A DNA stretch of 64,000 bases from Hydrolagus colliei (Eukaryota). The notes beneath the pieces are model-generated. The model had not been told where the DNA came from. It worked only from the letters and a program-made list of their open reading frames with translations, and ran no database searches. This document shows, one piece after another, positions 11,104 to 58,509 of this stretch. The position numbers were made by a program, and so were the translations under genes. The first letter of the stretch is position 1. Each line of letters begins with the position of its first letter. The stretch lies in NCBI GenBank assembly GCA_035084275.1, contig CM068744.1:42718001-42782000 (forward strand), read 5' to 3'.

Positions 11104-11129
11104 GTAAGTAACCCATCAACATCATCACA

Positions 11130-12160: not shown

Positions 12161-12511
12161 GTGCGAGCGAGGACCCGGTGCTCACTCAGTCTCCGGCAAT
12201 GCTGAGGGTACCAGAGGGAGCCCCAGTGCAGATACACTGCTCCATGGACAGGGCCGCTGTGGGAGAGGCTGATGTGCACTGGGACTGGCAGCTGTCTGGA
12301 AATGAGAGCCAGTGGGGGCTCAGTCTCTTCACCAATGACACCGTCAGCAGGTCCCACAATGTGAGCCAGCGTTTCCAGCCTGTCAGGAACGTGACCAGTA
12401 ACAGCTACATTCTGAGCATCAGCAACACGTCAATCAGTGACTCCGGCCTCTATACCTGCAGAGTGTGGGGCTACATCCGGCCAAGTCAAGGCATCCGGCT
12501 CATTGTAACCA
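12161..12511 (+). CDS. Gene A exon 4: V-set Ig domain V3
   Basis: ttaacag| acceptor; VLTQSP, IHC, HWDWQ, DSGLYTC, QGIRLIVT; donor A|gtgagt; 351 nt, phase 1-1. Confidence 0.92.
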
Positions 12512-16734: not shown

Positions 16735-16739
16735 CTTAC

Positions 16740-18570: not shown

Positions 18571-19789
18571 CTTACCCTTATCAAGTTTCCTTGTCACACA
18601 AGCAAAGTACATTGGACTGGCCAGCCCTTCCCTTCATGAACCCTTATTGGTTATTTTTTATGATTTTATTTCTGTCTAGATGATACATGATTTTAAAATA
18701 GAGTCCCGATCATTTTACCTACAATGGACTGCAAACTTACTGGTCTGTAGTTCCCCAGGTCCCTCTTGTTACCTTTGTTACAGATAGGAGTAATATCTGC
18801 CGTTCTCCAGTATTGATCTCCAGTATTCACTGATTTTAAAAAGATTTGTGCCGTGTTTCTGTGACTTCCTCCTTTAGTTTTGCCAGTCTCCCCTCCACCA
18901 CAATCCTTAAAATCCAACTCATTTAAACTCTGCTGCCTACATTCTCATCCACAAAAAACTTCGCTCCCCCATTACCCCACTCCTTGCCAGACTTCACTGG
19001 CTCCCTGTCCCGGAGAGGATCGATTTGAAGATCCTCACCCTTGTTTTAAAATCCCTCCTCTGCACCCCCCTACCTCTCCGACCTCCTCAAACCAGCACCC
19101 ATTGCCTTCACTGGGTCTGGCCTCTTCCTTGTCCCGCAAATCCTCCGCCCCACCATCGGCAGCCATGCCTTCAGCCACTGTGCTCCGAGGCTCTGGAACA
19201 CCCTTCCTCACTCCCTTCGCCTCTCCACCTCTCTTCCCAGTTTCAGGTCTCAGCTAAAGACCTTTCCCTTCGACCGCGCCTTCGGTCACCTTTCTCCCCC
19301 TGCCCCTGGCTCGGGCCCGGGATCCGTTATTACAAAGCGCTCTGAGAGGTCCGGCGTCCGGCGTAGAGGGCACTACATAAATCGAAGATGTTGATGTTAG
19401 TTACTTAAGAATCCTCAGTTGCTATTCTTCTGGTCCCTAAGGTTGCTTTACCAGTGAGATGAACAGTGTCACAACTTTTCTCTGTAACATCCTTGAGTTC
19501 TCTTTCTTGATCAGATGGTTACCCGTCTCCTCCTTGGTAAAGACTGATTAAAACATTTTTTTAACACTTTTGCAGCTTGTGCTGGACTATTTGTCACGTT
19601 GTCTCCCGAACGCACCTCCAGTGGCCCTGTTCCATTGCTTGTTTTCCTTCTACTCACTATTCTGTGAAGTGCTGATGATTTTGTTTGTAAATTGCAGGCC
19701 CTGGAGCAAGTTCATTGCTTTATTTTTGGGGGGGATTTAGCATCTTGAGGCTGGTTCTCCCCCGGCCCAGTTCTTTCCTCAACAGGGAT

Positions 19790-20280
19790 CATGGCCTTGG
19801 ATCCATTGGCCACTCAAAGCCTGAGCTCTGTGGGGAGACACTGCTCTTGGTGGCCACTATACTGTGTTTGCTGTCATTCTTTCCACACTGATTTCACACA
19901 TAAACTTGCAAAGGGATTTATAACCTTGCCATTTATAATAATCTTTACATTTGATATATTGCCTTATCCCGAGATAATTCAAAACGCTTCACAGGATATA
20001 CAGTAAATTGCTGTGTATTTTGTGGGTAAATCCTGGAATCGAGTTAGCACACGGCAGTGTCCCACAAACAGCCATGGAGTGAGAGACCAAATTTATTTGA
20101 GGGATTCTTAGCCAGGCCATCAGGGTAGGCAGAGAGAGAGGGTGAGGGAAATTCCCTTCTCTTCTCTTGGGATATTTAACATCCATCTAAAGGATGGCAT
20201 GGCTCAGGATGCATTTCTTCCCCTGCACAGCACTGGGCGTTAGCATAGTTGAAGGTTCTCATCGGGGTGAGGGATGTTGC
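19790..20280 (-). mobile_element. SINE remnant (Deu-domain-like)
   Basis: Similar to the SINE at 44750-45110 and 54340-54720 ('ggatatttaacatcc', 'cagcactggg'). The family assignment is from recall. Confidence 0.45.
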
Positions 20281-20354
20281 TTTAATTCACGTCTGTGTCC
20301 AGGACTGAGCTGTTACTGTTGCTGAAACCCATGTGTGTTTGTGAATTGTTACAG

Positions 20355-20493
20355 TAGACACCAGCCATCCACACAGCCCTCATCGCATCAAAGTGATCAT
20401 AGGCTCCTCTCTGGCATGTCTCCTGCTGCTCTGCACCCTTCTCACAGCTCTCTTCTGCAGGAAACGTCTGAGCAGTAAGGCCCACAATGACAG
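20355..20493 (+). CDS. Gene A exon 5: short stalk + transmembrane helix
   Basis: ttacag| acceptor; DTSHPHSPHRIKVIIGSSLACLLLLCTLLTALFCRKRLSSKAHND; no charged residue in the hydrophobic core; donor AG|gtaaat; 139 nt, phase 1-2. Confidence 0.88.
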
Positions 20494-20859
20494 GTAAATC
20501 TGGGTTCCCAACAGCAGAGATCAGAGCCTTGGGTGACTGTTGTACCAGGTGGATTTCAGGGGACCAGGGAATTAACATTGGTGGAGACACTGTTGTAATT
20601 TGTCAATTGTTGTCATTTGTCATTTGTTGTTGTCATCCAGGAGAATTGTGATCTCAGCTTCCTTGTCCTCCCTTCCCTCCCGGTCTAACCCTAACCTCAA
20701 CTGTCCCATTGCTCACTCTCTCCACACAACTGTCTCTGACAAACACCCCTTCTCCTCCCTCATCCACAGCCTCCCCAACTCTCCCTGCATCTCAAATTCC
20801 ACATTCATGTATCCTTCATGACCCCAAATCCTCTCTTTACCGCTCTCTCCTTTATCCCA

Positions 20860-23200
20860 TCCCCACCCCAGCAAACCTATCTGCATTTGTATCCAAAATG
20901 CCGCTCCTTCTCCAATGAAGCCCTGACTATCCATGACGTCATTCTGAATGAGTATTCTTGGGCTCACAGAAACATGGCTCTCTCCCAGACTTCGTCCCCC
21001 TCATCCTGGTCTCCCATCCTGGCTGCAGTTTTCACCTTTCCCTCCTCCGCATCCTCCTGGCTTCTTCCTCACTGACATCTCCTCACTCCTAATCCTTGAC
21101 CCTCTGCATGAAACACCTGCTCATAATGCGAGATTTCAACCTCCACCTAAACTCCTCTTGCACGCATTTCACTGCACTCCTCTCCTCCCTAAACCCCACC
21201 CTCCACATCAACTCACTGACTATGGTCTCTCCCTTTCCCAGGACTCCAATGTCATCTTGGAGATTAAAAAAAATCGAAAGATATTGTTTACCATTTTCCA
21301 TTACCTCCTCTATGGACCCCATCAAACTCCCTCTATCTTCATAATAAACCTTGCGTTTGACATAGTGCTTTTCATGTCTGCTAGATATTTCAAAGGGCTT
21401 TGCAGAATACACAGTAAAGTGAAATGACTGTGTATATGTGGGTGAAACATGGCAGCCAATTGTGCTCAGTGAAAATCACCAATATATTATTGTTTTTTTG
21501 CATGGGATTATTATTAGCTGTGCGGAGTAAGGAAACTTGCCCAAGGTTATACTGTGCCTGGAATCGAACCCAGGTCTCTCGCTTGCAAGGCAAGTGTTCC
21601 AACAACTGAGCTGCAGAACTCCACATCAGACGCCAAGTGCAAAGAGGGACTAGAATTCTTTGCCTCAAAAACTGAAAACATCCGCATGGCTGCATCAACC
21701 TCCCCACCCCCATGTCACCTTCCACCACATCCATACCATCATCTACCTATGCCATGATTCCAGCTACTCTCCCCTACCTACATTCCTTTGCACCATTACT
21801 CCCTCCTCCCTCTCAACCACAATCACCAGGATGAAGTTCACAACTTGCTGCCTCCAACCCCAACCCATCAGCTGTGACAGCGCTTGACAAAGTCACAAAT
21901 GACATTCTCTCTCTATCTGTGACCAGGGCTCCCTCTGCCTCCATATCCTCCTGGATCTCTTTGTTGCATTTATCAGTTGACCCCACCATCCTCCTCCACC
22001 CCCTCTACTCCCTCATCTACCTCAGTGGGATCACACTCACATGGTTCAAGTACTACTTTAGCAAACCTCCATTGCATCTCAGCAAATGGTTTCTCGTCCC
22101 GCCCCAGTCCATTCACCTGTGGGGTTTCCCAGGGCTCCATCCTTGACCCTCTTGTTTTCCTTGTCTATCTGCTCCCTCTAGGTGATGTCTTCCACAGAGA
22201 CGGGGTAAACCGTATGAGGATGATAAATCTATTTTGCCTCAAGTAGCATCTCCAGGGCCCCTGATGTTCTATCAGCTGGCAGACATCAACAACAGCAACA
22301 AAATGACTTTCATGTCGGGAGGACGTCCCAAGCTGCTGAACATTCAGTTGGGACGCGAGCAGGGTGGGGAGGGTTAGGGTACGGGCAGTGGGACAGAGAG
22401 TAGGAAAGGGGAGAGAGTTAGAAGGGCAGCAGAATGCACTGTTGAAGAGGAAGGTCTTGAGACCGGCCTTGAACGAGGAAAGGGAGGAAGCGAGGTGAAG
22501 GGATTGTGGGATGGAGTTCCAGAGTGTGGGGACAGAGAGGCTGAAAGCCCAGCCACTGATGGTATGGCGGCTCGGGCAGCGGACATGGAGCATGCCAGAG
22601 CCCACTGAACGGAGGGGACGGGCGGGCTGATAGGGAGACAGTAGTTCGGAGAGATAGGTGGGGGCAAGGACGTGAATGGCCTTGAAAGTGAGGATGAGGA
22701 TCTTGAATTCAAGGCCTGGATGAGTGTAAACTTTGTGCAGCTGAACATGGATAAGATGGAAGCCATACTCCTTGGCTCCCGTCAATGTCTTCACTCCTGT
22801 GGTTCTAAACTGCTAAACCTCCCTGGGCTCTCCCTCAGTCTCAATGACCCGTGTGAAACCTAGGGTCCAATTCGACATTCAGCTGTCCTCCCTCACCAAC
22901 ATCTTATCCTTGACCAGGACAACTTTCTTCCACCTCCTCCACATTGCCCTCCTCTAACTATACCTTACCCCAAGTTCAGCCTGAACCCTTGTGCATGAGT
23001 TTGTCTCCTCTCGCCTGGATTCCTCCAACACTCTCCTCGCTGGTCGCCCCAGCTCCACCATCCAAACGATCAGCTGATTCAGACTTTGCTGCACACATAC
23101 TGACCCGGACCAAACTGTGTACCCACATCTCACCAGTTCTGGCTCCACCCAACGGATCAACTTCAAGATCCTCAAACTCATGATCAAATCCAGTCACTTC
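20860..23200. mobile_element. Cluster of L2 fragments in both orientations
   Basis: LTETWL, GVSQGSILDP and WNSIP motifs in broken frames. Confidence 0.7.
21370..21615 (-). mobile_element. tRNA-derived SINE (tRNA-Ala-like head)
   Basis: Minus strand reads gcagctcagttgttgg...ttgcaa...gggttcgattcc (A and B boxes), followed by ccttgggcaagtttcc. Confidence 0.6.
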
Positions 23201-23499
23201 GTGGCACCACACGTCCTACCTCCCTCTCTCTGACCACCATCAGAGGTCGCCCTTTCCACTCCTTGCTTTGGTGTAATTTCAGGGCAGTGTCAAACTCCTC
23301 GGCCCTCAATCCCTCCTCCTTGCCCCTTCACTCCCCTTTTTCAAGCGCAAACTGGATAACTTCTGCTTCTATTGTGCTTACAAATACCTCCTCCAGCTGC
23401 CCACCACCCCCAGCTCAGAGACAGGCTCTGCACACTGTTAAGCACTATAAGAAGCTGCCTGGTGTGGAGGGTGCTATATAAGTTATTGATCAGAATGTG

Positions 23500-23930
23500 A
23501 GCATCACGTCCATGGGGAGTGAGCAGGAAATGGGGTTAGAGTAGAGCAACAGAGGGGAGCAAGAATCAACTGAGACATGATGGCAGAGAGAACAGGGAAT
23601 GGGGTTAGAGTAGAGAGCTCCAGTGGGGGAAAGAGAACCAGCACAGACACAGTGGGGGAGAGAGCAGGGAATGGGCTTAAAGTAGAGAGCTCTAGTGGGG
23701 AGCGAGCACCAGCACAGACACAATGCAGAGAGAACAGGGAATGGGGTTAGAGTAAAGAGCTCCAGTGGGGGAATGAGTACCAGCACAGATACGATGGGGA
23801 GAGAGCAGGGAATGGGAGCAGGGAATGGGGCTAGAGGATAGAGCTCCAGTGGGGGAGTGAGCACCAGCACAGACATGATGTGGGGAGACAGAGCAGGAAA
23901 TTGGGTTCGAGTAGAGAGCTTCACATGCTG
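23500..23930. repeat. ~60-bp minisatellite upstream of cytoplasmic exon 1 (gene A)
   Basis: About 6 units of ggggttagagtagagagctccagtggggg...cagcacagac. The homologous array is at 33680-34000. Confidence 0.8.
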
Positions 23931-23974
23931 CATGTTCAGCGCTGGAGAGAAATGATTGTTTCTTCTGATTTTAG

Positions 23975-24009
23975 GAAACTCGCTGGTGTTGTGAACAGCA
24001 GGTGTGATG
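23975..24009 (+). CDS. Gene A exon 6 (cytoplasmic 1) KLAGVVNSRCD
   Basis: ttttag| acceptor, G|gtgagt donor, 35 nt, phase 2-1. The paralog at 33603-33637 has the same length. Confidence 0.75.
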
Positions 24010-24254
24010 GTGAGTAACTCAGTCCCACGATACACAACAGATCAACACAGCAGTGTTGGGGGAGGAATGCCGTTGTTGGAGCTGTGGTCTTGTAGATGTG
24101 GTATTAAACTAATGGTCCTCTCTGCCTAATGCATGTTAAAGGTCCTATGATGCTACTGGAAAACAGAAGAGAATCTCTCGTGAGGCGCTGGGTAAATGTC
24201 AGACTGTAAACCTTGTGTTGTGTATCAATAATCCTTGTTTTGGTGTAATTTCAG

Positions 24255-24298
24255 GGCAGTGTCAAGCTCCTCGGCCACAGACAGCCAGCAGCTCTGAG
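24255..24298 (+). CDS. Gene A exon 7 (cytoplasmic 2) QCQAPRPQTASSSE
   Basis: tttcag| acceptor, |gtaagc donor, 44 nt, phase 1-0. Confidence 0.8.
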
Positions 24299-24384
24299 GT
24301 AAGCCCATGTATCACACCCCCTGTATCACACCTAGTTTGTGTGGCTTGGTGATGGCTGTGTGTGACTGTGTGGCTCTGTTTCAG

Positions 24385-24501
24385 GAGCCGGAACCGGACG
24401 TGCTTTACGCTGACGTGCAGTTTGTGCCACGAACCAGAGGCAGCGACACCGTGAGAGAGAACCTGGACTGCACGGAGTACGCTGAGGTCAGGCGGGCCTG
24501 A
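24385..24501 (+). CDS. Gene A exon 8: terminal exon with ITIM (VLYADV) and ITSM (TEYAEV)
   Basis: tttcag| acceptor, 117 nt to TGA. The eight exons sum to 1422 nt, i.e. 473 aa plus stop, in frame. Confidence 0.88.
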   Translation, partial: EPEPDVLYADVQFVPRTRGSDTVRENLDCTEYAEVRRA

Positions 24502-25839
24502 GCAACACCCTCCCCTGCCTTCCCTCTGCCCCACCTTCTGCCTCACCCTCTGCCACACCCATAACACTCCATCTAGCCCTCTCTCCCACTCGCCTATACC
24601 CCTCTCTCTTCCCTTCCTTGTGCCTGACCCATACCCCTCCCTCTGGCTCTCCCCTGCCTCTCCCTTTGCCTTGCCCATACTATTGCCTCTGCCCCACCTT
24701 CTGAACAGTTTATTTTTGTGCGTGATCAGTGGTCAGGTTGGTGGTTGGGGCTATGGGTAGGTTGTTGGGTGGGGTAGTGTGCATGTTGGTGGGTGGGGCA
24801 CATGTTGGCTGAGGCTGTCTGAAGATATTGCTCTGAATGTGTTATGTGGAAGTATATAAATCAATCTGAGATGTTGTTTCTCATTCTGTCTCTTTTTTAT
24901 GTAAAATACTAAATCTTTTCAATGAAACAAAGTCCTGGAGCTTTTCTGCTTGGATTTATCTACACACTGTTGGGATATGGAGGTACTGTATTAAAAATTA
25001 TAGTTAGTTCCAATCAGGCACCAATTAAAACAATCTATCCACAACACAGGCATGGTCAGTAACCTTGAGCAAAAGGGAGAGATACAACTTGTCTACACAA
25101 AACACCAGGTACATATTCCCCTACGCTGAGACAACCTTGGGTACTGGTCCGTGCCAATAATCCAAGGAGCACAATAACATCAATAGCTTCTAGGATAAAT
25201 AAAGAATTGAAGGAGAGCGGCTCAAGATATAGATAGGGACAGAGGATTCAATTAACAAAGGCGCAAAGGAATGTACCCATTTGGGAAATTGCCAAGTGAG
25301 TAGCTGGACAGCCATCTCAAGGTCTGGGAAAAGAAGGGAGGCAAACAACTCCCTATAACTCTGGCCTTTAGATAGTCTAATTTTGACATCGCTTCTGGAC
25401 AATGTCCAAGTGATCAACTGGCTGAGTTAATTATGGTGGAGAAGTATAAAGATAGGAGAGAAAGAGTGGCTCATTACAACAGTTGGGGAGTCTCAAGGTA
25501 AACTGATGTCTCCAGCCTGCCACTGTTGTCCAGAACTACTGGAATGGGTCATGGTTCCAGTTGTTTTGTTTTACAGGCAGAGAAGGGTCAGTTAGAGAAG
25601 GAAAGTTAGAGAAGGAAAGTTAGAAGGAGTGAGTATTGTGAGAAGCCTGAACCTGACTTAAGGTGTAACAGCCTGAATCCAGCATTGTATTCTACATAGA
25701 ACTGGTAGTTTGATTATTTACTCTTTTATTCTATCATTCTAAATTGCTTATAATCATTAAATCACTATACCTTTATTAAGGATTGTTGGGTCATTATTTT
25801 GAAATCCCCAAATTCTCACAACTCAAGTGTCAACAAGTT

Positions 25840-30945: not shown

Positions 30946-31273
30946 CTACCACCAAAGATAAACTATCCAGAGGGGCAGAGGGCAGGACAGTGGGAGGGGC
31001 AGAGTGAGGCAGTGGCGGCATGGGTGAAGCAGAGGTTGTATGGGGGAATGAGGCAGAGAATGAATTTATCATGAGTAGAGGATGAGTCAGTGGGAGGTGT
31101 ATGGATGGGGCAGATAGTTGGGTAGAGGGAGGGGCAGAGGAAAGGCAATGGGCAAGGCAGAGGGTGGGGAAGATGGAGGGATATGGGTGGGGCAGAGGGT
31201 GAGGCAGAGGGAGGAGCAGAGAGAGGGATATGGACGAGGCTGAGGCAGAGGGAGAGTAGTGGTAGGGTGTTGC

Positions 31274-31390
31274 TCAGGCCCGCCTGACCTCAGCGTACTC
31301 TGTGTGGTCCAGGTCCTCTGTCACGGTGTCGCTGCCTCTGGTTCGAAGCACAAACTGCACGTCAGCGTAAAGCACGTCCGGTTCTGGCTC
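31274..31390 (-). CDS. Gene B distal terminal exon: ITIM (VLYADV) + ITSM (TEYAEV)
   Basis: tttcag| acceptor; EPEPDVLYADVQFVLRTRGSDTVTEDLDHTEYAEVRRA*; 117 nt. Confidence 0.75.
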   Translation of the reverse strand, partial: EPEPDVLYADVQFVLRTRGSDTVTEDLDHTEYAEVRRA

Positions 31391-31476
31391 CTGAAACACA
31401 ACCACACAGTCACACACAGCCATCACCAAGCCACACAAACTGGGTGTGATACAGTGGATGTGATACATGGACTTAC

Positions 31477-31517
31477 CTCAGAGCCGGTGGCTGTCTGGCG
31501 AGGAGCCTGACAGTGCC
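31477..31517 (-). CDS. Gene B duplicate cytoplasmic exon 2 (HCQAPRQTATGSE), weak acceptor
   Basis: 41 nt, phase 1-0, donor gtaagt. The acceptor tgtacag lacks a pyrimidine tract. Confidence 0.45.
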
Positions 31518-31983
31518 CTGTACACTAACCTGTCCACAGCCCCACCCACCAAACTCTCCATAGACCCACATGCCAAGCTGACCCACGCACTCACCAACCT
31601 GCCCAGAGACCCACACCAATCTGTCCACTGGCTACCGTCCAACATAAACTGTCCTGAGGGGCAGAGGACAGGACAGCGGGAGGGGCAGAGTGAGTTGTAT
31701 ATGTGGGGCACAAGGTGAAGCAGAGGGGGCATGGGGGAATGGGCATTTATTGTTGGGGTAGATGGTGAGTCAGTGGGAGGTGTATGGATGGGGCAGATAG
31801 TGGGGCAGAGGGAGGGGAATGGGCGAAGCAGAGGGTGGGGAAGATGAATGAGTATGGGTGGGGCAGTGAATGGAAGAGGGCGGGGAAGAAGGAGGGGTAT
31901 GGATGAGACTGATGGTGGGGCAGAGGGAGGGGTATGGATGAGGCAGAGGGTGGGGCAGAGGGAGAGTAGTGGTAGGGTGTTGC

Positions 31984-32091
31984 TCAGGCCCGCCTCACCT
32001 CAGCGTGGTCTGGGTTCTCTCTCACGGTGTCGCTGCCTCTGGTTCGTGGCACAAACTTCAGGTCAGCGTAAAGCACGTCCGGTTCCGGCTC
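31984..32091 (-). CDS. Gene B proximal terminal exon: ITIM only (VLYADL), ITSM deleted
   Basis: 108 nt; EPEPDVLYADLKFVPRTRGSDTVRENPDHAEVRRA*; AATAAA on the minus strand at 31746-31751. Confidence 0.8.
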   Translation of the reverse strand, partial: EPEPDVLYADLKFVPRTRGSDTVRENPDHAEVRRA

Positions 32092-32178
32092 CTGAAACAC
32101 AGCCACACAGTCACACACAGCCATCACCGAGCCACACAAACTAGGTGTGATACAGGGGGGCGTGATACATGGGCTTAC

Positions 32179-32222
32179 CTCAGAGCTGGTGGCTGTCTGT
32201 GGCCGAGGAGCTTGACACTGCC
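32179..32222 (-). CDS. Gene B cytoplasmic exon 2 QCQAPRPQTATSSE
   Basis: 44 nt with canonical splice sites, near-identical to 24255-24298. Confidence 0.8.
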
Positions 32223-33602
32223 CTGAAATTACACCAAAACAAGGATTATTGATACACACAAGGTTTACAGTCTGATATTTACACAGCGCCTCACTATGGC
32301 GGAAGTTCCAAAGAACGGAAGCAGAAAGGCTGATTATGCGGCAGGTAGCCCGAGTGCTATAAAGCAGGGTTGGAAGGTTGTCAGGTCACAGGAGGAGGCC
32401 ATTCAGCCAGTCTAGCCTGCTCTGCCAGGTCAGTCAGCACATCCTTTAATTCCATTCCCCACATTATTATCATTTTCCTCATTCCAAAATATTCAACAAA
32501 GACCCTGTTAAGAAGCGTCCATAAACAATGGTTGGTAAATGGGACTGAAAGGATTTTTCTTCAAAGAGGCATGATGGTAGTCTTCTGTGCTGTCTAATCC
32601 ACTTTGATTTTCTTGAAAAGAGGTAAGCAGCTGCTACACCACCTAGGGAGCCATCACTTACTGGGATGGGACGTGTGCTCGGGCTGTGGACAGAAATATG
32701 GTGCCAATGCTCTGAGCCCACTGGGAAGCTTACAGTTCACATCTCCTTAACTTCCCAGTTCATTTCCTGAGATTGTTTCTAGCCTATCACCCTATCCTCC
32801 CGACATGAAAGGCGCTCTATAAATATAATTCAAATTCCTGATAACCTATCATGCTCCCAGGACCTTCCTCTCGCTGCCTACAGCCCCAGTCAACAACCCG
32901 CAAACAACCCCGAATACCTACTCATTAGGAATGACTTGAATCTCCATCATCAACTCTTCCTGCTGCAACTCAACTCTCCCCCTTACCCTCTGCATAAACT
33001 CCCCCATGGCCTCACTGTCGCCCATCTCGCCATTACTGACACTAACCACATCCTCATCTCCCTCTCATCCACACACCATCTTGGGATCCTGAACCTGATG
33101 TCTGCCAAGAATCAGTCAGGACAGCAGTGGTCCTGATATCAAGGGTGGATACAGAGAGATAGAGTTGGGAGTCTTGCCTTGCAAGTGGAAATCGATCGTA
33201 CTTCCAATTAGTGACAGACAATGTCACGAAGGGAAGCAAGGTGACGATGGTGAAGAGGAGAGAACCAAGGTCAGCGCCTCACAGATCCAAGAGTGAAACC
33301 AGGAGAGGACAGAACCATAAAGGTGGAGCATGGAGGAGAGACGGTGGAGAAAGATGGAGTGGTTGACAATATCAAAGGCAGAGACTACGAGTGGGGATAG
33401 GGTGGCAAAGGGATGATTGCTAAAAACTAGAGATTCTCTTCTGTTTTCCAATAGCATAATAGGACCTTTAACATGCACTAGGCAGAGAGGACCATTAGTT
33501 TAACATCACATCTACAAGACCATAGGTCCAACAATGGCATCCCTCCCCCAGCACTACACTGCTGTTTTGGCCTGTTGTGTATCATGGGAATGAGTTACTC
33601 AC

Positions 33603-33637
33603 CATCACAGCTGCTGTTCACATCGCCAGCGAGATTT
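33603..33637 (-). CDS. Gene B cytoplasmic exon 1 NLAGDVNSSCD
   Basis: gatttag| acceptor, G|gtgagt donor, 35 nt. Confidence 0.75.
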
Positions 33638-35670
33638 CTAAATCCAGAAGGAATAAACAATTATTTCCAGAAGGAATAAACAATGTGGAACTCTCTACTC
33701 TAACCCCATTCCCTGCTCTCTCTCTCTCTCTCCATGGTGTCTGTGCTGGTGTATGCTCCTCCACTGGAGCTCTCTACTCTAAACCCATTGCTTGCTCTCT
33801 CCCCATCGTATTTGTGATGGTTCTCATTTCCCCACTGGAGCTCTTTACTCTAACCCCATTCCGTGCTCTCTCTCCATTGCATCTGTGCTGGTGCTCATTC
33901 CCCACTAGAGCTCTCTACTTTAACCTCATTCCCTGTTCTCTCTCCATTGTGTCTGTGTCTGCCCTCTGTAACTCTACTTTAACCCCATTTCCTGCTCACT
34001 AGCCATGGACGTGGTGCTTACACTCTGATCAATAACTTATAGAGCGCCCTCCACACTGGGCAGCTTCTTATAGTGCTTAATAGTGGGCAGAGCCTGTCTC
34101 TGAGCTGGGGGTGGTGGGCGGCTGGAGGAGGGTGTTTATAAGCATGGTCGAAGCAGAAGTTATCCAGTTTCGGCTTGAAAAGGGGGGAGCAAGGAGGAGG
34201 GATTGAGTGAGAGTGGAAAGGGCGACCTCTGATGGTGGTCAGAGGGAGGGAGGGAGGCAGAGTGGTGCCAGGAAGTGAATGGATTTGAAAATGTTTGAGG
34301 ATCGATCATGAAGTCAATCCATTTGGTGATGGGGAGTCAGTGAAGCCGGAACTGGTGAAATGTAGGTACAAAGTTTGGTCCGGGTCAGTATGTTTGTGGT
34401 AATGTCTGAATCAGCTGATCTTTTGGATGGTAGAGCTGGGGAGACCAACGAGGACAGTGTTGGAGGAATCCAGGCGAGAGGAGGCAAACTCATGCACAAG
34501 GGTTCTGGCTGCATTTGGGGTAAGGTATAGTTAGAGGAGGGCAATGTGGAGGAGATGGAAGAAGGTCAAGGAAAAGATGTGGGAGAGGAAGGACAGCTGG
34601 ATGTCGAATTGGACCCTAGATTGTGCACTGGATCATTGAGTCTCAGGGAGAGTCCAAGGAGATTGAGGACTTTAGAACCACAAGAGTGAAGACGTTGATG
34701 GGAGCCAAGTATGGCTTCCATCTTGTTGGAAGCCATACTATGTTATGTTCAGCTGAAGGAAGTTTACACTCATCCAAGCCTTGATGTCTGACAGACAAGC
34801 TGATAAAACATCAGTGGACCTGGAGATGCTATTGGAGGCAAAGTAGATTTGTGTGTGATCCTCACACATGTAAAAGTTTACCCTGTGTCTGTGGAAGATA
34901 TCACCCAGAGGGAGCAGATAGACAAGAAAAAGAAGAATGTCATGGATGGAGCCCTGGGGAACCCCAGAGGTGACCGGGCTGGGGCGGGATGAGAAACCAT
35001 TTGCTGAGATAAAATGTAGGACAAATCTGTGACAAATGCAACAAAGAGATCCAGGAGGATGTGAAGGCAGAGGGAGCCCTGGTCAGAAATGGAGAGGATG
35101 TTGTTTGGACTTTGCCAAGCGCTGTCACAGTGCTGAGGGCAGTCAGGGCGTAAGCCAGACTACAGGGGGTGGAGAAGGGAGGTGTGTGACCAGAGTTGAC
35201 CTGTAACATGGGGTTCCAGGACTTTTGTCAAGGAAGTGTAGGTTGGAGATTGGGCAATAGTGAGAGAGATTAGAGGGATGGAGGGTGGGTTTATTGAGGA
35301 GAGGTGGGATGACAGCGGTTTTCAGGGTGATAGGAACAGAGCCTCAGGAGAGAGACTGGTTGATTGTGTCAGCAGCAGGGGAAGATGTGGGGGAGTTACA
35401 AAGGGTTACTCAAACGGTTGGGTGTCAGAGACATTTCTGTGGATAGAATGAGCAATGGGACAGTTGAGGTTAGGGTTAGACCAGGAAGGAAGGAAGGACA
35501 AAGAAGATGAGATCACAATTCTCCTGGATGACAACAACAAATGACATTGAATGACAGTGTCTCCACCAATCTCAATTCCCTGGTCCCCTGAAATCCACCT
35601 GGTACAACAGTCACCACGTTGTTAGCACATCCCAAGGCTCTGATCTCTGCTGTTGGGAACCCAGATATAC

Positions 35671-35809
35671 CTGTCATTATGGGCCTTAATGCTGAGACGT
35701 TTCCTGCAGAAGAGAGCTGTGAGAAGAATGCAGAGCAGCAGAAGACATGCCAGAGAGGAGCCTATGATCACCTTGATGCGATGAGGATGTTGTGGATGGC
35801 CGGTGTCTT
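35671..35809 (-). CDS. Gene B stalk + transmembrane exon
   Basis: DTGHPQHPHRIKVIIGSSLACLLLLCILLTALFCRKRLSIKAHND; 139 nt; ttacag| acceptor and AG|gtatat donor. Confidence 0.88.
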
Positions 35810-37285
35810 CTGTAACAATTCGCAAACACACATGGGTTTCAGCAACAGTAACAGCTCAGTCCTGGACACTGACCTGACTTAAAGCAGCATTTGATGAGAT
35901 TTTACTCTTACATCCCTCACCTCGATGAGAACCTTCAACTCAGTCTATGCTGAAGCCCAGTGCCGTGCTGGAGCAGAAACATTGTGAGTCATGCCATCCT
36001 TCAGGTCGATGTTAAATATCCCAAAAGAAGGGAGTTCCCTCAATCACTAGCTTTCTCCCCTGGTGTCCTGGCCAAAATTCCACCAAATAAAATTGGTCTA
36101 TCACTCCATGGCTGTTTGTGGGACACTGCTGTGTGCTAACTGGATGCCAGGATTTGCCACCAACATACACAGCAATTTACTGCTTCTACTTGTCCACAAT
36201 AGTAAAACCAGGGTCACAGCCTGTGATTGAAGCAGGGGAAATTCAGATTGCATCTACGCAAACATTATTTCAGTCAGTGAATAGTGAATCTGTGGGACAG
36301 GCTCCCTTGGGAGATGGTTGAAGCAGGAACTGCTGATTCTATCAAAAACAGACAAGTGTTTTCTTTTAGGAAATAACATAATGGGACATATACAGTACAT
36401 GGGTAGTTTGGGACACATGCACATGTGACCATCAGGAACGTGAAGTGGATGGACCTTGGCCTTTTATTGTCAACCATTTCTTATGTTCTCTGAGAGCAGC
36501 GCTGCCACCCGCTGGTCACCTTGTGTATTATTATTAATCTGCATTTGAACAGCATCTTTCACATCGGGACAATGTCTTCAAGGGATTTACTGCAAAGTGT
36601 AGTGGCTGTGTATAATGCAGGTGAATTTACCATCGCAATGTCCAACAAACAGCCACAGAGAGAGTGAACAATTGTATCTGAGGATTGTTGGCCAAGACAC
36701 TGGCAGAGACAAACTCCCTTCTATTTTCCAATGATGCCAAGGGATATTAAACATCCACCCGACAGGCAGCCAGAACTTTGTCTCACCTGAAGGATGGAAC
36801 CTCTAACAGTGCAGCCCCCACTCTCCCCCAGCACTGCATTGGAGTATCAGTTTAGACTGTGAGTTAACATTCACCTGAATGGACACAGGTGGCGGTTTGA
36901 CTATGCCTTGGAACGTCCTCCTGATATGAAAGACACACTACAAATGTAATTGTGTTGTTGTTGTTCCCCTTAAATAGATCAATTCCATTGATCTCAACTA
37001 CTCCATGCCGGAGCAAGTTCCTCATTCCCACCAGAAGGAGGCGAGGAGGGTTGGGGGGAGGATTGTGAAAGAGGTGGAGATGCCACGAGAAGCCTGTTTG
37101 TGACTGTTGGATTTCCACAGAGGCTGGTTAACAGGGACTTGACAGGGAGGCTGTGGAGCCCAGTATGGTCACAGAGGAGGGGGGGAGATGAGACAATAAC
37201 AATGGGAGGGGCTGGGCATCTATCCTGTTGTCCATGTCAGATGAAGGAATGAATGGACTTGATGGCTGAGTGCTGCTGTACTCAC

Positions 37286-37636
37286 TGGTTACAATGAGCC
37301 GGATGCCTTGACTTGGCCGGATGTAGCCCCACACTCTGCAGGTATAGAGGCCGGAGTCACTGATTGACGTGTTGCTGATGCTCAGAATGTAGCTGTTACT
37401 GGTCACGTTCCTGACAGGCTGGAAACGCTGGCTCACATTGTGGGACCTGCTGACGGTGTCATTGGTGAAGAGACTGAGCCCCCACTGGCTCTCATTTCCA
37501 GACAGCTGCCAGTCCCAGTGCACATCAGCCTCTCCCACAGCGGCCCTGTCCATGGAGCAGTGTATCTGCACTGGGGCTCCCTCTGGTACCCTCAGCATTG
37601 CTGGAGACTGAGTGAGCACTGGGTCCTCGCTCGCAC
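37286..37636 (-). CDS. Gene B V3' exon (duplicate)
   Basis: 351 nt, open, canonical splice sites, offset 2655 bp from 39941-40291. Confidence 0.85.
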
Positions 37637-37871
37637 CTGTTAATGGCAAACAGTCAAAGTTTAACACAGGCACTAGGGATCCAGAGAATGGGGAAAGAGG
37701 GGCTAAAAGCCTGAGCCCCAATGCTGGGGTGGGGTGGGCGGGGGACAAGGAGCAGGCCGGAGCCCACTGAGTGGAGGGAGCGGACAGATCTATATGGAGT
37801 TAGCAGGTCACAGAGTGATTTTATCTGGGGATTATTGGCCAGGACAGTGAGAGAATATAACATGTACTGAC

Positions 37872-38216
37872 TGGTTATGTTCAGCCCGGTCCCGTCCCCA
37901 CAGACATCTCCCCACACACAGCAGTGATAGACGGCAGCATCACTGAGCGTCACGGTTGGGAGGATCAGAATGTAGGTGTTATTGGAGGTGACTCTGGACG
38001 GCTGGAGACGCTGAGTGGAACCTTCGGAGCCTGTTATCCTGTCACTTGTATCATGTGTTAAAATCCACTCTCTCCGCTGTCCTGGGAGTTGTCGGTACCA
38101 GTGTACGTCAGTGCTGATCACGTTGGCCTTCTCCATGGAGCACTGTAACCGGGCCGGGCGTCCCTCGGTGACACGTTCCAGGGTCGGGGACTGAACCAGG
38201 AGAGGAACAGGTTCAC
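37872..38216 (-). CDS. Gene B V2' exon (duplicate)
   Basis: 345 nt, open, canonical splice sites. It has a few substitutions versus 40527-40871 (EP/EA, TSD/TND, GS/GP). Confidence 0.85.
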
Positions 38217-38411
38217 CTTTGAGGGAAACATTTCCTTCAGTTACAATCCAGCCTGAATATTGACCAACAAACCTTCTCTCCTACAGCCCCCCCACCCCAC
38301 ACACCCTGTGTGACTCTCTCTCTCTGTCTCTCCCTGGGTGGCTCTCACTCTCCCTGTGTAACTCTCACTCTCTGTCCCTGTATGACTCTCATTTCCAGAC
38401 AGCTGGGAATG

Positions 38412-38464
38412 AGAGCCTATGATCACCTTGATGCGATGAGGATGTTGTGGATGGCCGGTGTCTT
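38412..38464 (-). pseudogene. Truncated copy of the TM exon (5' part only)
   Basis: The acceptor is intact and encodes DTGHPQHPHRIKVIIGS. It is then cut at the duplication junction before the hydrophobic helix. Confidence 0.8.
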
Positions 38465-39940
38465 CTGTAACAATTCACAAACACACATGGGTTTCAGCAA
38501 CAGTAACAGCTCAGTCCTGGACACTGACCTGACTTAAAGCAGCATTTGATGAGATTTTACTCTTACATCCCTCACCTCGATGAGAACCTTCAACTCAGTC
38601 TATGCTGAAGCCCAGTGCCGTGCTGGAGCAGAAACATTGTGAGTCATGCCATCCTTCAGGTCGATGTTAAATATCCCAAAAGAAGGGAGTTCCCTCAATC
38701 ACTAGCTTTCTCCCCTGGTGTCCTGGCCAAAATTCCACCAAATAAAATTGGTCTATCACTCCATGGCTGTTTGTGGGACACTGCTGTGTGCTAACTGGAT
38801 GCCAGGATTTGCCACCAACATACACAGCAATTTACTGCTTCTACTTGTCCACAATAGTAAAACCAGGGTCACAGCCTGTGATTGAAGCAGGGGAAATTCA
38901 GATTGCATCTACGCAAACATTATTTCAGTCAGTGAATAGTGAATCTGTGGGACAGGCTCCCTTGGGAGATGGTTGAAGCAGGAAATGCTGATTCTATCAA
39001 AAACAGACAAGTGTTTTCTTTTAGGAAATAACATAATGGGACATATACAGTACATGGGTAGTTTGGGACACATGCACATGTGACCATCAGGAACGTGAAG
39101 TGGATGGACCTTGGCCTTTTATTGTCAACCATTTCTTATGTTCTCTGAGAGCAGCGCTGCCACCCGCTGGTCACCTTGTGTATTATTATTAATCTGCATT
39201 TGAACAGCATCTTTCACATCGGGACAATGTCTTCAAGGGATTTACTGCAAAGTGTAGTGGCTGTGTATAATGCAGGTGAATTTACCATCGCAATGTCCAA
39301 CAAACAGCCACAGAGAGAGTGAACAATTGTATCTGAGGATTGTTGGCCAAGACACTGGCAGAGACAAACTCCCTTCTATTTTCCAATGATGCCAAGGGAT
39401 ATTAAACATCCACCCAACAGGCAGCCAGAACTTTGTCTCACCTGAAGGATGGAACCTCTAACAGTGTAGCCCCCACTCTCCCCCAGCACTGCATTGGAGA
39501 ATCAGTTTAGACTGTGAGTTAACATTCACCTGAACGGGCACAGGTAGCGGTCTGACTATGCCTTGGAACGTCCTCCTGATATGAAAGGCACACTACAAAT
39601 GTAATTGTGTTGTTGTTGTTCCCCTTAAATAGATCAATTCCATTGATCTCAACTACTCCATGCCGGAGCAAGTTCCTCATTCCCACCAGAAGGAGGCGAG
39701 GAGGGTTGGGGGGAGGATTGTGAAAGAGGTGGAGATGCCACGAGAAGCCTGTTTGTGACTGTTGGATTTCCACAGAGGCTGGTTAACAGGGACGTGACAG
39801 GGAGGCTGTGGAGCCCAGTATGGTCACAGAGGAGGGGGGGAGATGAGACAATAACAATGGGAGGGGCTGGGCATCTATCCTGTTGTCCATGTCAGATGAA
39901 GGAATGAATGGACTTGATGGCTGAGTGCTGCTGTACTCAC

Positions 39941-40291
39941 TGGTTACAATGAGCCGGATGCCTTGACTTGGCCGGATGTAGCCCCACACTCTGCAGGTAT
40001 AGAGGCCGGAGTCACTGATTGACGTGTTGCTGATGCTCAGAATGTAGCTGTTACTGGTCACGTTCCTGACAGGCTGGAAACGCTGGCTCACATTGTGGGA
40101 CCTGCTGACGGTGTCATTGGTGAAGAGACTGAGCCCCCACTGGCTCTCATTTCCAGACAGCTGCCAGTCCCAGTGCACATCAGCCTCTCCCACAGCGGCC
40201 CTGTCCATGGAGCAGTGTATCTGCACTGGGGCTCCCTCTGGTACCCTCAGCATTGCCGGAGACTGAGTGAGCACCGGGTCCTCGCTCGCAC
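39941..40291 (-). CDS. Gene B V3 exon
   Basis: 351 nt; the protein appears identical to gene A V3. Confidence 0.9.
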
Positions 40292-40526
40292 CTGTTAATG
40301 GCAAACAGTCAAAGGTTAACACAGGCACTAGGGATCCAGAGAATGGGGAAAGAGGGCCTAAAAGCCTGAGCCCCAATGCTGGGGTGGGGTGGGCGGGGGA
40401 CAAGGAGCAGGCCGGAGCCCACTGAGTGGAGGGAGCGGACAGATCTATATGGAGTTAGCAGGTCACAGAGTGATTTTATCTGGGGATTATTGGCCAGTAC
40501 ACTGAGAGAATATAACATGTACTGAC

Positions 40527-40871
40527 TGGTTATGTTCAGCCCGGTCCCGTCCCCACAGACATCTCCCCACACACAGCAGTGATAGACGGCAGCATCACTG
40601 AGCGTCACGGTTGGGAGGATCAGAATGTAGGTGTTATTGGAGGTGACTCTGGACGGCTGGAGACGCTGAGTGGGACCTTCGGAGCCTGTTATCCTGTCAT
40701 TTGTATCATGTGTTAAAATCCACTCTCTCCGCTGTCCTGGGAGTTGTCGGTACCAGTGTACGTCAGTGCTGATCACGTTGGCCTTCTCCATGGAGCACTG
40801 TAACCGGGCCGGGCGTCCCTCTGTGACACGTTCCAGGGTCGGTGACTGAACCAGGAGAGGAACAGCCTCAC
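40527..40871 (-). CDS. Gene B V2 exon
   Basis: 345 nt, open, canonical splice sites. Confidence 0.9.
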
Positions 40872-41315
40872 CTTTAAGGGAAACATTTCCTTCAGTTACA
40901 ATCCAGCCTGAATATTGACCAACAAACCTTCTCTCCTACAGCCCCCCTACCCCACACACCCTGTGTGACTCTCTCTCTCTGTCTCTCCCTGGGTGGCTCT
41001 CACTCTCCCTGTGTAACTCTCACTCTCTGTCCCTGTATGACTCTCTCTCTCTCTCAATGTGTGATTCTCTCTCTCTGTGTTTCTCTCTCTCTCCGTCTCC
41101 CTGTCTGACTCTCTCTCTCCCTCTCTCTGTGTGTGTCTCTCTCTCCCTGTGTGTGTGTCTCTCTCTCCCTGTGTGATTCTCTCCCCGTGTGACTCTCTCT
41201 CTCTCACTGTATGTCTCTCTCTCCCTGCTTGTGTCTTTCTCTCCGTCTCCCTGTGTGACTCTCTCTCTCCCTGTGTGACTCTCTGTTGATGTGATGATGT
41301 TGATGGGTTACTTAC

Positions 41316-41657
41316 TGGTCACATTAATCACAGTCCCAGCTCCGTAGACAGTACCATACACACCACAGGTATAGACAGCGGAGTCTGTGAGTCTCACATC
41401 AGTGATCGTCAGAGAACAGCTGTTGTTGTTGATGTGTTTCTTTGACTCAAAACGGTTCCCAACATTCTGTCTCCCAAAGTAATTCTCATAATGGGTGATT
41501 ATATGTTTCCTGCTGTCCCCAGGTAGCTGCTGGTACCAGTGGAGATGCACTGGCTTCATCTCAGCGCCTCCCAAGACACACAGTGAGTGGACGGTCTGAC
41601 CCTCTCTCACAATTACATGTGGCGGAGTCTGTGTCAGGACAGCAGCTCGAGTTCCCC
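41316..41657 (-). CDS. Gene B V1 exon
   Basis: 342 nt, open; differs from gene A V1 by P>R and two H>Y changes. Confidence 0.9.
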
Positions 41658-43848
41658 CTGTAAACAGTGAATAGGTACAGACTGTCACAAGGTGAGGAGT
41701 GAGACACACACACAGGGCAGCAGATTGAGCACCTTGTCTCTGATCAAAGCTACAAAGATGGTGTTAATCAGGGCTGTATATGTTATAGGTTGTTCATATG
41801 GTACCATGGACACTGGTCCAACAAGTGGCCACATCCGGCCCAACAGGTGATGGTATCTGGCCTGAGACCTTTAGGCTGCCCGCTCCCTCCCTCCCTGGGC
41901 AGCGGCAGGAGCCAGGAGTTGGGGGAAGTGGAATAATGTCGGCCATTACTGCAGTGTGTACCTGAGCTGGGGGGGGTGGGAGGTAAACTGGTCTCCTTAT
42001 CCACTCCTTCCTCACCAACCACCGGTTCCTGCCACCCTACATAGTGACCATTGTGGCTGATTGAGAGAAGAGAGAGTGATTGGGAGAGAGCGAGAGTGAT
42101 TGAGATAGAGGGAGACAGTGACTGAGAGAGAGGGAGAGTAATTGAGGGAGAGGAAGATAAAGTGATTGGGAGTGAGAGTGATTGGGCAAGAGGAAGGGTG
42201 ATTCCAAGAGAAGCATTGAGAGAGAAGGAGAGTGTGATCGAGATAGTAGGAGAGATGTTCTCTATCATCACGCTGATAGCGTGATTGAGAAAGTGATTGA
42301 TGGAGATGGAGAGTCATTGAGAGAGAGGGAGAGAATGATTGGGAGAGGGAGTGAGTGATTGGGAGAGGGGGAAAGGGAGCGAGTAATTGGGAGAGGCGGA
42401 GAGTGATTGAGAGAAAGGGATGGTGAGATCGAAAAAGTGTCAGTTAGAGATAGGAAGAGAGTGATTGACAGAGAGTGATTGCGAGTGAGGGCAAGAGTGA
42501 TTGTGAGAGGAGCAAATAATTGGGAGAGAGGGAGAGGGTGATTGGGAGAGAGTGATAGAGAGAGGATGTGGTTAAGAGAGAGAGAGAATGTGATTGAGGC
42601 AGAGGGTATGATAGAGAGACTGATAGAGAGAGGGTTTGAGAAAGGGGAAGAGAGGCATTCAAAGAGAAGGAGGGAGTGAGAGTGAGGTAAAAATTGATTC
42701 AAAGAGGGGAAAAGAGAAGTGGCGAGGGATAGATTGTGAAAGAAAGGAGTGTGTTTGCTGGAGAAGGAGAGGGACTGCGAGAGAAAGGGGAGAGAGTGGG
42801 ATTGAGAGAGAGAAATGGGGCAAAGGTGGGTAATTGGAGTTGAGGTATAGATGAGCCATGATCTAATGAAATGGTGGGACAGGCTTGAGGGATTGAATGG
42901 CCTCCTTCTGGTCCTATGTTCCATGGACGGCAGTTCTTACAAGATAGACCTCCCCCACCCCTAAACTCGAGTGTCAAATTAGACAAGAGCTCAAGGTCCA
43001 ACAAGGGGGTTGAACCTACAAGTTTCGGACCCAACCTCCTCGCCGGTCTCCTCAGCTCCAAACCACCACTGCCCGTATCCTTACTGACACTAAACTCCGT
43101 ACCCCATTACCCAGGCTCTACTGATTCCCTATCGCACACACTAAACTCGCTCCCCCATCACCCCAGCCCTCACAGGACTCCACTGACTCCCAATCACACA
43201 AACTAAACTGATCCAGTAAACTGATTCCCTCCCTCCCTCATTCCCTCCCTCCCTCCCTCATTCCCTCCCTCCCTCATTCCCTCCCTCCCTCACTCACTCA
43301 CTCACTCACCTCCCATCTCTCCATCCCTCTCTCTCCCTCCCACACACACTCCCTCACTCTGTTCCTCACACACTCCCTCCCTCCCTTACTCACGACTTCC
43401 CTCCCTCCATCTTTCTCTCCCTTGCTCACTGTCTCCCTCCTTTCCTCCCTGCCTCGCTTGCTCCCTCCCTTGCTTGCTCCCTCCCTCGCTCGGTCACTTA
43501 CTCACTCTGTCTTGCTTCCTCACTCCCTCCCTTCCTGATTCACACTCTCCTTCCCTCCTTCATTCCCTCACAGCCTCCCATCCCTCCCTCCCTCACTCCC
43601 ACATACACATACACTCTCTCATTCTGTTCATCATACACTCTCTCCCTCCCTTACTCACAGTCTCCCTCCCTCCTTCCATCCATCTCTACCTTGCTCACAT
43701 CCCTCCCTCTCTCTCTTTCCCTCATTCCCTCCCTCCATCACACACTTCCTTGATTCCTACTTTCCTTCCTCCCTCATATCCTCCCTCCTTCACAACTTCC
43801 TTCCCTCCCTCCCTCAAAGCCTCCCTCCCTCGCTCCTTCCCTCACTTG

Positions 43849-44068
43849 NNNNNNNNNNNNNNNNNNNNNNNNNNNNNNNNNNNNNNNNNNNNNNNNNNNN
43901 NNNNNNNNNNNNNNNNNNNNNNNNNNNNNNNNNNNNNNNNNNNNNNNNNNNNNNNNNNNNNNNNNNNNNNNNNNNNNNNNNNNNNNNNNNNNNNNNNNNN
44001 NNNNNNNNNNNNNNNNNNNNNNNNNNNNNNNNNNNNNNNNNNNNNNNNNNNNNNNNNNNNNNNNNNNN
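43849..44068. other. Assembly gap (N run) inside gene B intron 1
   Basis: 220 Ns. Confidence 1.
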
Positions 44069-44117: not shown

Positions 44118-44166
44118 CTTCAGTCACCCAGAGGAGCAGGCTGACAGTGAAGACACTTGTTCTCAT
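44118..44166 (-). CDS. Gene B leader exon MRTSVFTVSLLLWVTE(G)
   Basis: 49 nt, phase-1 donor G|gtcagt, paralogous to the gene A leader. Linkage to V1 crosses an assembly gap. Confidence 0.82.
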
Positions 44167-58472: not shown

Positions 58473-58509
58473 CAAACTCCTCCTTCCACAGGTTGCAGAT
58501 AATCCAGAA

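Follow-up and report, generated by a model that had tools for sequence, protein, structure and literature searches.

Duplicating Ig-domain exons in frame is a textbook way for immune receptors to alter their reach and valency. Siglecs and CEACAMs carry C2/I-set repeats behind an N-terminal V domain, and LILR/KIR receptors consist of C2/I-type domains only. In CEACAM5, the A-B pairs are symmetric blocks of phase-1 Ig exons that were duplicated in frame, while KIR2DL1-3 retain a pseudo-exon that is skipped. Gene B, located on the minus strand at ~44.2 to 31.3 kb of the window (the whole 64,000-nucleotide stretch of Hydrolagus colliei DNA that was analysed), resembles the CEACAM/PSG and KIR/LILR/Siglec genes as an IgSF immune receptor in a duplicated cluster with in-frame blocks of phase-1 Ig exons, and its truncated TM exon (TM stub), which must be skipped, is analogous to the KIR2DL1-3 pseudo-exon. 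However, those receptors have at most one V domain, whereas gene B lacks C2/I-set repeats and is V-set throughout, so that it was not assigned to the Siglec, LILR/KIR or CEACAM families and kinship is limited to the Ig fold. A likeness to Siglec/LILR/CEACAM-type clusters, proposed in an earlier sequence-only reading of this DNA, thus holds as an analogy in mode of evolution but not as kinship, since gene B has V-set domains only and appears to belong to a family specific to cartilaginous fishes.

The novel immune-type receptors (NITRs) of bony fish, known from ray-finned fish, contain a single V domain, either alone or together with an I-type domain (PMC2442602; PMC6795676). Gene B shares with them non-rearranging, antigen-receptor-like V domains with a J-like G-x-G-T motif (YGAGT in V1 and GDGT in V2) and ITIM-bearing tails. 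Unlike NITRs, it has three to five V-set domains and its nearest relatives are all from cartilaginous fish, with no NITR among its protein matches; it was therefore not classified as one.

Gene B is predicted to encode a type I membrane receptor in which a leader is followed by tandem antibody/TCR-like V-set domains (V1, V2 and V3 types), a TM and an ITIM/ITSM tail. Its protein matches (E values down to 1e-176 to 1e-265) are all chondrichthyan among the top ~49, and point to a cartilaginous-fish-specific family of multi-V ITIM/ITSM receptors. Gene B has the features of this family: its V-set domains stand in tandem, can be typed as V1, V2 and V3 and are each encoded by a single exon, and they are followed by one TM and a tail with ITIM (xLYADxxF) and ITSM (TEYAxI/V), both of which are found in the distal tail in gene B. 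Every gene B domain scores best as V-set, with V-type WY(R/Q)Q and YxC motifs, and the nearest matches outside the family are Ig light-chain and TCR V regions. The V2 exon DNA is 86–87% identical to a Callorhinchus milii locus, the closest match in a single-exon ORF protein search (79%) was also from C. milii, and looking up the V2 ORF for exact matches gave none. NCBI models of the family bear unrelated '-like' names, and full-text literature searching found no published name for it. Pairing in cis of adjacent V domains as Fv-like modules was also considered and found no support: a 3-V homologue modelled with AlphaFold had good domains but a pTM of 0.36, and scFv matches across two domains were at ~14 Å rmsd, which is a weak test.

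All five V exons of gene B (342, 345 or 351 nt) are open and in phase 1-1, as had been read earlier, and are flanked by AG...GT; the 702-aa frame L-V1-V2-V3-V2'-V3'-TM-tail could be reproduced. This predicted model joins the leader, the five V exons, the complete TM exon, a 35-nt candidate exon and the two exons of the proximal tail module (Table 1); it is open and gives five Pfam V-set matches, compared with three stretches in the 3-V model. The 35-nt exon is tentative because no conserved counterpart was found in gene A, an inverted paralogue whose leader (8305–8353) lies within a block 89.7% identical to gene B. The proximal tail has lost its ITSM tyrosine (...NPDHAEV...), leaving only the ITIM, and no homologue-like 'NPVYATV'-type cytoplasmic exon was found. 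A suspected reverse-transcriptase fragment at 34741–35082 had no Pfam match.

Table 1. Features of gene B, the duplication junction and gene A, with positions in the window (slash, splice junction)
Feature	Position	Strand	Evidence or content
Leader exon, gene B (MRTSVFTVSLLLWVTE)	44118–44166	-	donor AAG/GTCAGT, phase 1; paralogous to gene A leader
V1 exon	41316–41657	-	342 nt, phase 1-1; open, AG...GT; outside duplication
Copy 2 (upstream in gene orientation)	38413–41045	-	self-BLAST, base comparison; 99.05%, no indels
V2 exon	40527–40871	-	345 nt, phase 1-1; open, AG...GT
V3 exon	39941–40291	-	351 nt, phase 1-1; open, AG...GT
V3-exon 20-mer CAGCTGTCTGGAAATGAGAG	40144–40163	-	exact match; likely template of junction insertion
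TM-stub pseudo-exon (KDTGHPQHPHRIKVIIG)	38413–38464	-	intact acceptor ttgttacag/ and first 52 nt of TM exon; authentic donor lost
Junction filler, 22 bp	38391–38412	-	minus strand reads TCATTCC + CAGCTGTCTGGAAAT
Copy 1 (downstream)	35758–38390	-	self-BLAST, base comparison; V2', V3' and start of complete TM exon
V2' exon	37872–38216	-	differs from V2 at 6 nt; 3 changes are non-synonymous (A>P, N>S, P>S)
V3' exon	37286–37636	-	2 differences from V3, both synonymous; protein identical
Complete TM exon	35671–35809	-	139 nt; donor CAG/GTATAT; aligns to TM of homologues
Candidate cytoplasmic exon	33603–33637	-	35 nt, needed for frame; strong donor; tentative
Proximal tail module	31984–32222	-	exon 32222–32179 and terminal exon 32091–31984; ITIM VLYADL kept
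Distal tail-module duplicate	31277–31520	-	ITIM VLYADV and ITSM TEYAEV
Gene A, inverted paralogue	10310–13626	+	V1-V2-V3 single copy; outgroup
Gene A TM exon	~20381–20467	+	approximate position
Gene A tail	24382–24498	+	VLYADV...TEYAEV

Window self-BLAST and base-by-base comparison identified, inside gene B, two direct head-to-tail copies of 2,633 bp differing at 25 positions without gaps, which bears out both the exact 2,655-bp offset and the "few substitutions" noted before. Each of the three pairs of anchor positions proposed earlier is right: the V2/V2' exons end with 40527/37872 and the V3/V3' exons with 39941/37286, and the TM stub and TM exon begin with 38464/35809, respectively. Copy 2 comprises the 3' part of intron 1, the V2 exon, an intron, the V3 exon, an intron and the first 52 nt of the TM exon. 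Outside both copy ends the identity drops at once to random levels (16–38% in 50-nt windows). No N run occurs at or near the junction, the closest (43849–44068) being within the intron after the leader exon. The duplication seen earlier is thus confirmed in the sequence and looks genuine.

The left breakpoint (35757/35758) lies within the TM exon and the other in the GA-rich intron 1, with no shared homology between them; since the copy flanks have only random-level identity, non-allelic homologous recombination was ruled out. The junction, described earlier as complex, contains a 22-bp filler which, with the next five nucleotides (GAGAG, 38386–38390), includes a stretch (38386–38405) that matches 20 nt of the V3 exon exactly (0 matches expected by chance). 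The same 20-mer recurs at 37489–37508 (V3') and 12289–12308 (gene A). FoSTeS/MMBIR and polymerase-theta end-joining junctions are known from human copy-number variants, and the gene B junction is like these in being head-to-tail without breakpoint homology and in having a short insertion templated within ~1–2 kb and a 5-nt microhomology, here GAGAG at the intron-1 switch. It differs from them in that the mechanism is read from the scar alone and seven nucleotides, TCATTCC, are unaccounted for; a longer microhomology (CTGGCA, present in the TM exon and V3) was rejected as their source by eye, as the expected sequence would be CTCTCTGG. We suggest that the 2,655-bp segment, which starts in the GA-rich intron 1 and ends midway through the TM exon, was duplicated non-homologously. 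Either polymerase-theta-type end joining or FoSTeS/MMBIR, a replicative form of template switching, is the most likely mechanism, with the junction built from 7 nt of unexplained origin and then 15 nt from the V3 exon, joined to the intron via GAGAG.

The same scar bears on whether the repeat is an assembly artefact, in which a single V2-V3 region was entered twice in tandem, from two haplotypes or from mis-joined reads. Two alleles of a polymorphic immune locus could in principle diverge to this extent without indels, multigene and repeat-rich regions are error-prone, and assembly gaps are present elsewhere in the window. However, the junction is ungapped, its boundaries are sharp and non-homologous, and one breakpoint cuts an exon; moreover, the filler with its templated V3 copy and microhomology is a mutational signature rather than an assembler product, which favours a real mutation and makes an artefact very improbable. 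Templated-insertion junctions are, on the other hand, compatible with deletion as well as duplication and therefore do not discriminate between them. Two complete tandem gene B copies fused by a deletion, from the upstream mid-TM exon to the downstream intron 1, would leave a formally identical end structure (V1-V2-V3-TM stub / intron 1 remnant-V2-V3-TM), and the family does evolve via gene duplication, as in the A/B pair and the duplicated tail modules. Since this history demands two events (a >10-kb whole-gene duplication, then the deletion) instead of one, and no further remnant of a second gene copy was found on the gene B side of the locus, we regard it as most improbable.

With gene A as outgroup, the two copies have 36 substitutions in common, and they differ from each other at 25 sites (0.95%) but from gene A by 2.3–2.8%, indicating that the duplication is younger than the A/B split. 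The derived substitutions are unevenly distributed: the downstream copy has 17 and the other copy 6 (binomial p = 0.035). Substitutions are also clustered, with five falling within 54 bp (p about 0.01 by simulation), so that a single event followed by simple clock-like divergence does not fully account for the pattern.

Both V2 and V3 are symmetric (phase 1-1) and keep their splice sites unchanged; their inclusion together with skipping of the donor-less stub would therefore give L-V1-V2-V3-V2'-V3'-TM-tail, i.e. a taller 702-aa receptor with two additional V domains, the ITIM motif suggesting that it may be inhibitory. The receptor lengthening proposed earlier is supported as regards the intact duplicated V2-V3 pair, the open frame and its recurrence in the family (see below). 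A 5-V mRNA or protein is a prediction; the cut TM exon left a stub with an intact acceptor, and the strongest cryptic donor within it is frameshifting. The stub acceptor equals the real TM acceptor except at position -12, and the cryptic donor AAG/GTGATC scores 7.0 against 3.2–8.4 for real gene donors (rough consensus matrix). Use of this donor would create a 38-nt exon and a stop at residue 408, whereas read-through into the intron is open for 77 codons and would end at residue 437 as a 3-V product without TM. The duplication might be real and yet have caused no lengthening, with the stub acceptor capturing splicing (frameshift and likely decay, or a TM-less 3-V form) or one V2-V3 cassette being skipped, which is conceivable given the weak V2/V2' donor CCA/GTCAGT (3.2 with the same matrix); the extra copy would then be neutral or mildly damaging. 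We consider this rather unlikely: the authentic TM exon has the same cryptic donor yet must splice normally to encode the conserved TM, the 38-nt exon is poorly defined, and no AATAAA or ATTAAA was found between the stub and V2'. In addition, the four duplicated exons are still open, with 5 synonymous versus 3 non-synonymous changes, and annotation pipelines predict 5-V products from analogous repeats elsewhere. The best explanation overall, which we hold with moderate confidence, is that gene B is a receptor of this family in which a non-homologous duplication after the A/B split would give a stub-skipping 5-V product.

Near-identical V2-V3 repeats also occur in relatives with the same V1/V2/V3 types, TM and ITIM/ITSM tail: 1) Isoform X2 of Mobula hypostoma LOC134350035 is predicted to be V1-V2-V3-V2-V3 (V2/V2' 91%, V3/V3' 99% identity). 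2) A predicted 5-V protein of Mobula birostris has identities of 86% (V2/V2') and 96% (V3/V3'). 3) A predicted Heptranchias perlo protein is V3-V2-V3-V2, with repeat identities of 90/100%. 4) Carcharodon carcharias has a genomic tandem repeat with a 6.7-kb period and 98.3% identity. These repeats are independent events in other lineages, and the gene B protein is only ~45–51% identical to these proteins. The white-shark repeat has its boundaries at V2-type exons, which is compatible with homologous unequal exchange, whereas gene B has non-homologous breakpoints, a cut TM exon and a residual stub. The occurrence of similar repeats in its relatives makes the event in gene B fairly ordinary. A bolder reading, which we consider improbable, is that gene B could yield both a tall 5-V membrane inhibitory receptor (stub skipped) and a secreted, TM-less 3-V decoy (stub acceptor used, read-through to the stop at 437), that the allele could segregate with a 3-V form as a polymorphism in domain number, and that selection on a functional V2-V3 module would explain why the pair was duplicated repeatedly and independently in rays, sharks and this chimaera-like fish. 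If so, the cut in the TM exon would have made the duplication more than a lengthening.

The gene B duplication is a fresh instance of an already known type of event and raises no new question on its own; its value is mostly descriptive, in documenting a non-homologous origin, probably by template switching, for such a duplication. It is, however, a clean example caught young, with less than one percent divergence and a junction scar that is still legible, and it shows that duplication of the V2-V3 pair is recurrent within the family. To our knowledge, innate IgSF receptors of the cartilaginous-fish lineage are almost undescribed, and the finding draws attention to an uncharacterised family of multi-V ITIM/ITSM receptors that appears to be specific to cartilaginous fishes and whose V domains resemble those of antigen receptors.

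Comparison of the window with itself revealed that gene B, a minus-strand receptor gene with multiple V domains, carries two direct copies of a 2,633-bp unit (35758–38390 and 38413–41045) with 25 substitutions and no indels (99.05% identity). The offset between them is exactly 2,655 bp, identity drops to random immediately outside both copy ends, and no run of N was found near the junction between the copies. This tandem duplication, which a sequence-only reading had placed at the same offset, is real and was borne out in every detail: the three anchor pairs of that reading are the ends of V2/V2', the ends of V3/V3', and the starts of the truncated transmembrane exon (TM stub) and the complete TM exon; the five V exons, described as phase 1-1, are open and AG/GT-flanked; and the 702-aa product was reproduced, with the frame open through the proximal tail exons. 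The model, in which five V-set stretches were identified (Pfam), includes a tentative 35-nt exon; the version with three V domains (3-V) has 470 aa. V2 and V2' differ by 6 nt (3 amino-acid changes), and V3 and V3' by 2, both synonymous. The lengthening of the receptor proposed in the same reading is supported in part: it holds at the genomic level, where open V2-V3 exons are duplicated, and expression of a longer receptor and polymorphism are possible.

Exons of gene B and features of its inverted 3-V paralogue, gene A (window positions)
Gene	Feature	Position	Strand	Remarks
B	Leader	44166–44118	minus	MRTSVFTVSLLLWVTE, phase 1; conserved with gene A leader
B	V1	41657–41316	minus	342 nt, phase 1-1, open, AG/GT-flanked
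B	V2	40871–40527	minus	345 nt, phase 1-1, open, AG/GT-flanked
B	V3	40291–39941	minus	351 nt, phase 1-1, open, AG/GT-flanked
B	TM stub	38464–38413	minus	52 nt
B	V2'	38216–37872	minus	345 nt, phase 1-1, open, AG/GT-flanked
B	V3'	37636–37286	minus	351 nt, phase 1-1, open, AG/GT-flanked
B	Complete TM	35809–35671	minus	
B	Tentative 35-nt exon	33637–33603	minus	used in 702-aa frame
B	Proximal tail	32222–32179, 32091–31984	minus	
A	Leader	8305–8353	plus	
A	V1–V3	~10716–12513	plus	
A	TM	~20381	plus	
A	Tail	24382–24498	plus	

The left breakpoint (35757/35758) lies within the TM exon, so that the upstream copy closes with a truncated TM exon, and the right breakpoint (41045/41046) lies within GA-rich intron 1. 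The copies are separated by a 22-bp filler (minus strand, TCATTCC-CAGCTGTCTGGAAAT). Its last 15 bases, read on into the next five (GAGAG), reproduce 20 nt of V3-exon sequence without a mismatch; this 20-mer is otherwise present only in the window's three V3 exons, none being expected by chance. The breakpoints thus share no homology, and the scar combines an insertion templated 0.9–1.75 kb away with a 5-nt microhomology. Such a scar is the expected trace of replicative template switching (FoSTeS/MMBIR) or theta-mediated end joining, by one of which the duplication most likely arose. An assembly artefact is improbable, since the scar is of this type and unlike a haplotype duplication made by an assembler. 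At 41020–41300, 42060–42700 and 43190–43810, long degenerate GA/CT-rich repeats with a period of ~20 nt (GAGAGTGATTGGGAGAGAG-like) occupy intron 1 of gene B and the intron between its leader and V1; the right breakpoint lies at the edge of one of them.

Gene A aligns with the duplicated unit over 2.2 kb, diverging by 2.3% from the upstream and 2.8% from the downstream copy, whereas the copies differ from each other by only 0.95% and have 36 substitutions relative to gene A in common. Since the copies share these substitutions and are nearer to each other than to gene A, the tandem duplication is, judged from these comparisons, younger than the A/B inverted duplication. The derived state was found in the downstream copy at 17 of the 23 polarisable differences and in the upstream copy at 6 (p = 0.035), and the differences are clustered, with 5 in 54 bp at 36880–36933 in the V3'-TM intron (simulation, p ~0.01). 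Such a pattern may point to a conversion tract donated by an unseen paralogue, or else to one copy having been made by error-prone (repair) synthesis. Genes A (10310–24548, plus) and B (42076–31936, minus) are convergent, tail-to-tail inverted paralogues, with 94–97% identity in the V region and 82–92% in the TM and tail regions; the V3-TM intron of gene A is ~6.4 kb longer (extra 13627–20000).

The duplicated V2-V3 exons are symmetric and their splice sites are unchanged; therefore, default inclusion with the TM stub skipped would give a predicted receptor with five V domains (5-V). The stub could instead be used, as it retains an intact acceptor and contains, 38 nt in, the donor-like site AAG|GTGATC, which scores 7.0 (real donors, 3.2–8.4; rough consensus matrix). 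Splicing at this site is predicted to shift the frame so that translation stops at residue 408. Weaker alternatives of 96 or 192 nt would keep the frame and add a linker, and if the stub were read through, the product would be a 3-V protein that lacks the TM segment and terminates at residue 437. However, stub skipping is moderately preferred, because the authentic TM exon contains the same cryptic donor yet must still splice normally, and a 38-nt exon is poorly defined. The reading as a whole, duplication with stub skipping and a predicted 5-V receptor, has a somewhat better than even chance of being correct. For Fv-like pairing of neighbouring V domains, an AlphaFold model of a 3-V homologue had a pTM of 0.36 and matched scFvs at ~14 Å rmsd, values too poor to bear on such pairing.

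Both ITIM and ITSM are kept in gene A and in the distal tail of gene B; the proximal tail has lost the ITSM tyrosine. Alternative gene B tails could alter signalling. The two-exon tail module is itself tandemly duplicated (30946–31520 vs 31632–32225, minus strand, 79.8% identity), the distal copy reading VLYADV...TEYAEV (ITIM and ITSM) and the proximal copy VLYADL...DHAEV (ITIM only).

In protein searches, high-significance matches came only from cartilaginous fishes (rays, skates, sharks and Callorhinchus), with full-length identities of 45–51%, and 72–79% for the Callorhinchus V2 domains; next in rank were V regions of Ig light chains and TCRs, and the PDB matches were antibody V domains. 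The canonical architecture is L-V1-V2-V3-TM with an ITIM (LYYADIQF) and an ITSM (TEYAAIK). NCBI names of the matching proteins were uninformative, and a literature search found no published family name. The nearest match to the window came from a Callorhinchus milii locus (in WEZY01002071.1), with V2-type exons at locus positions 9882–10272 and 13144–13551; these lie 3.26 kb apart, have 86–87% DNA identity to the window's V2 exons and belong to a V2-V2-TM model (P0026). The window is probably of holocephalan origin, but corresponds to no annotated Callorhinchus gene. Dispersed repeats in both orientations (14037–14950, 17134–18120 and 58502–59416; also 44388–45134/54324–55080; 82–88% identical), presumably transposable elements, have relatives in this locus (67–80% identity). 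The stretch 60915–63625, which is likely hard to assemble, holds three N runs and a G-rich minisatellite with extreme GC skew; the 19–21-nt units of the latter (such as GGCTGTGTGTGTGGGGGGGGG) are arranged in higher-order periods of 61, 104, 189 and 208 nt.

Typing of each domain in 75 family members gave the architectures V1-V2, V1-V2-V3 and V1-V2-V3-V2, the last of them widespread, as well as several recent repeats of the V2-V3 unit: 1) Mobula hypostoma, V1-V2-V3-V2-V3, with V2 copies 91% and V3 copies 99% identical; 2) M. birostris, with the same order (86% and 96%); 3) Heptranchias, V3-V2-V3-V2 (90% and 100%); and 4) white shark, V2-V3-V2-V3-V2. Since such repeats recur and the C. milii locus has two V2 exons, lengthening by V-exon duplication is a habit of the family. 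In a homologous white-shark gene (Carcharodon carcharias CM029966.1, locus positions 2919–16715), a 6.7-kb unit bearing V2- and V3-type exons is repeated in tandem (2.05 copies, 98.3% identity). Both ends of the repeat fall at V2-type exons, a layout consistent with unequal homologous exchange. In contrast, the mechanism in gene B is a different, non-homologous one. The gene B event is a fresh instance of an already known type in a little-studied receptor family, and adds a holocephalan-type case of V-exon lengthening by this different mechanism.
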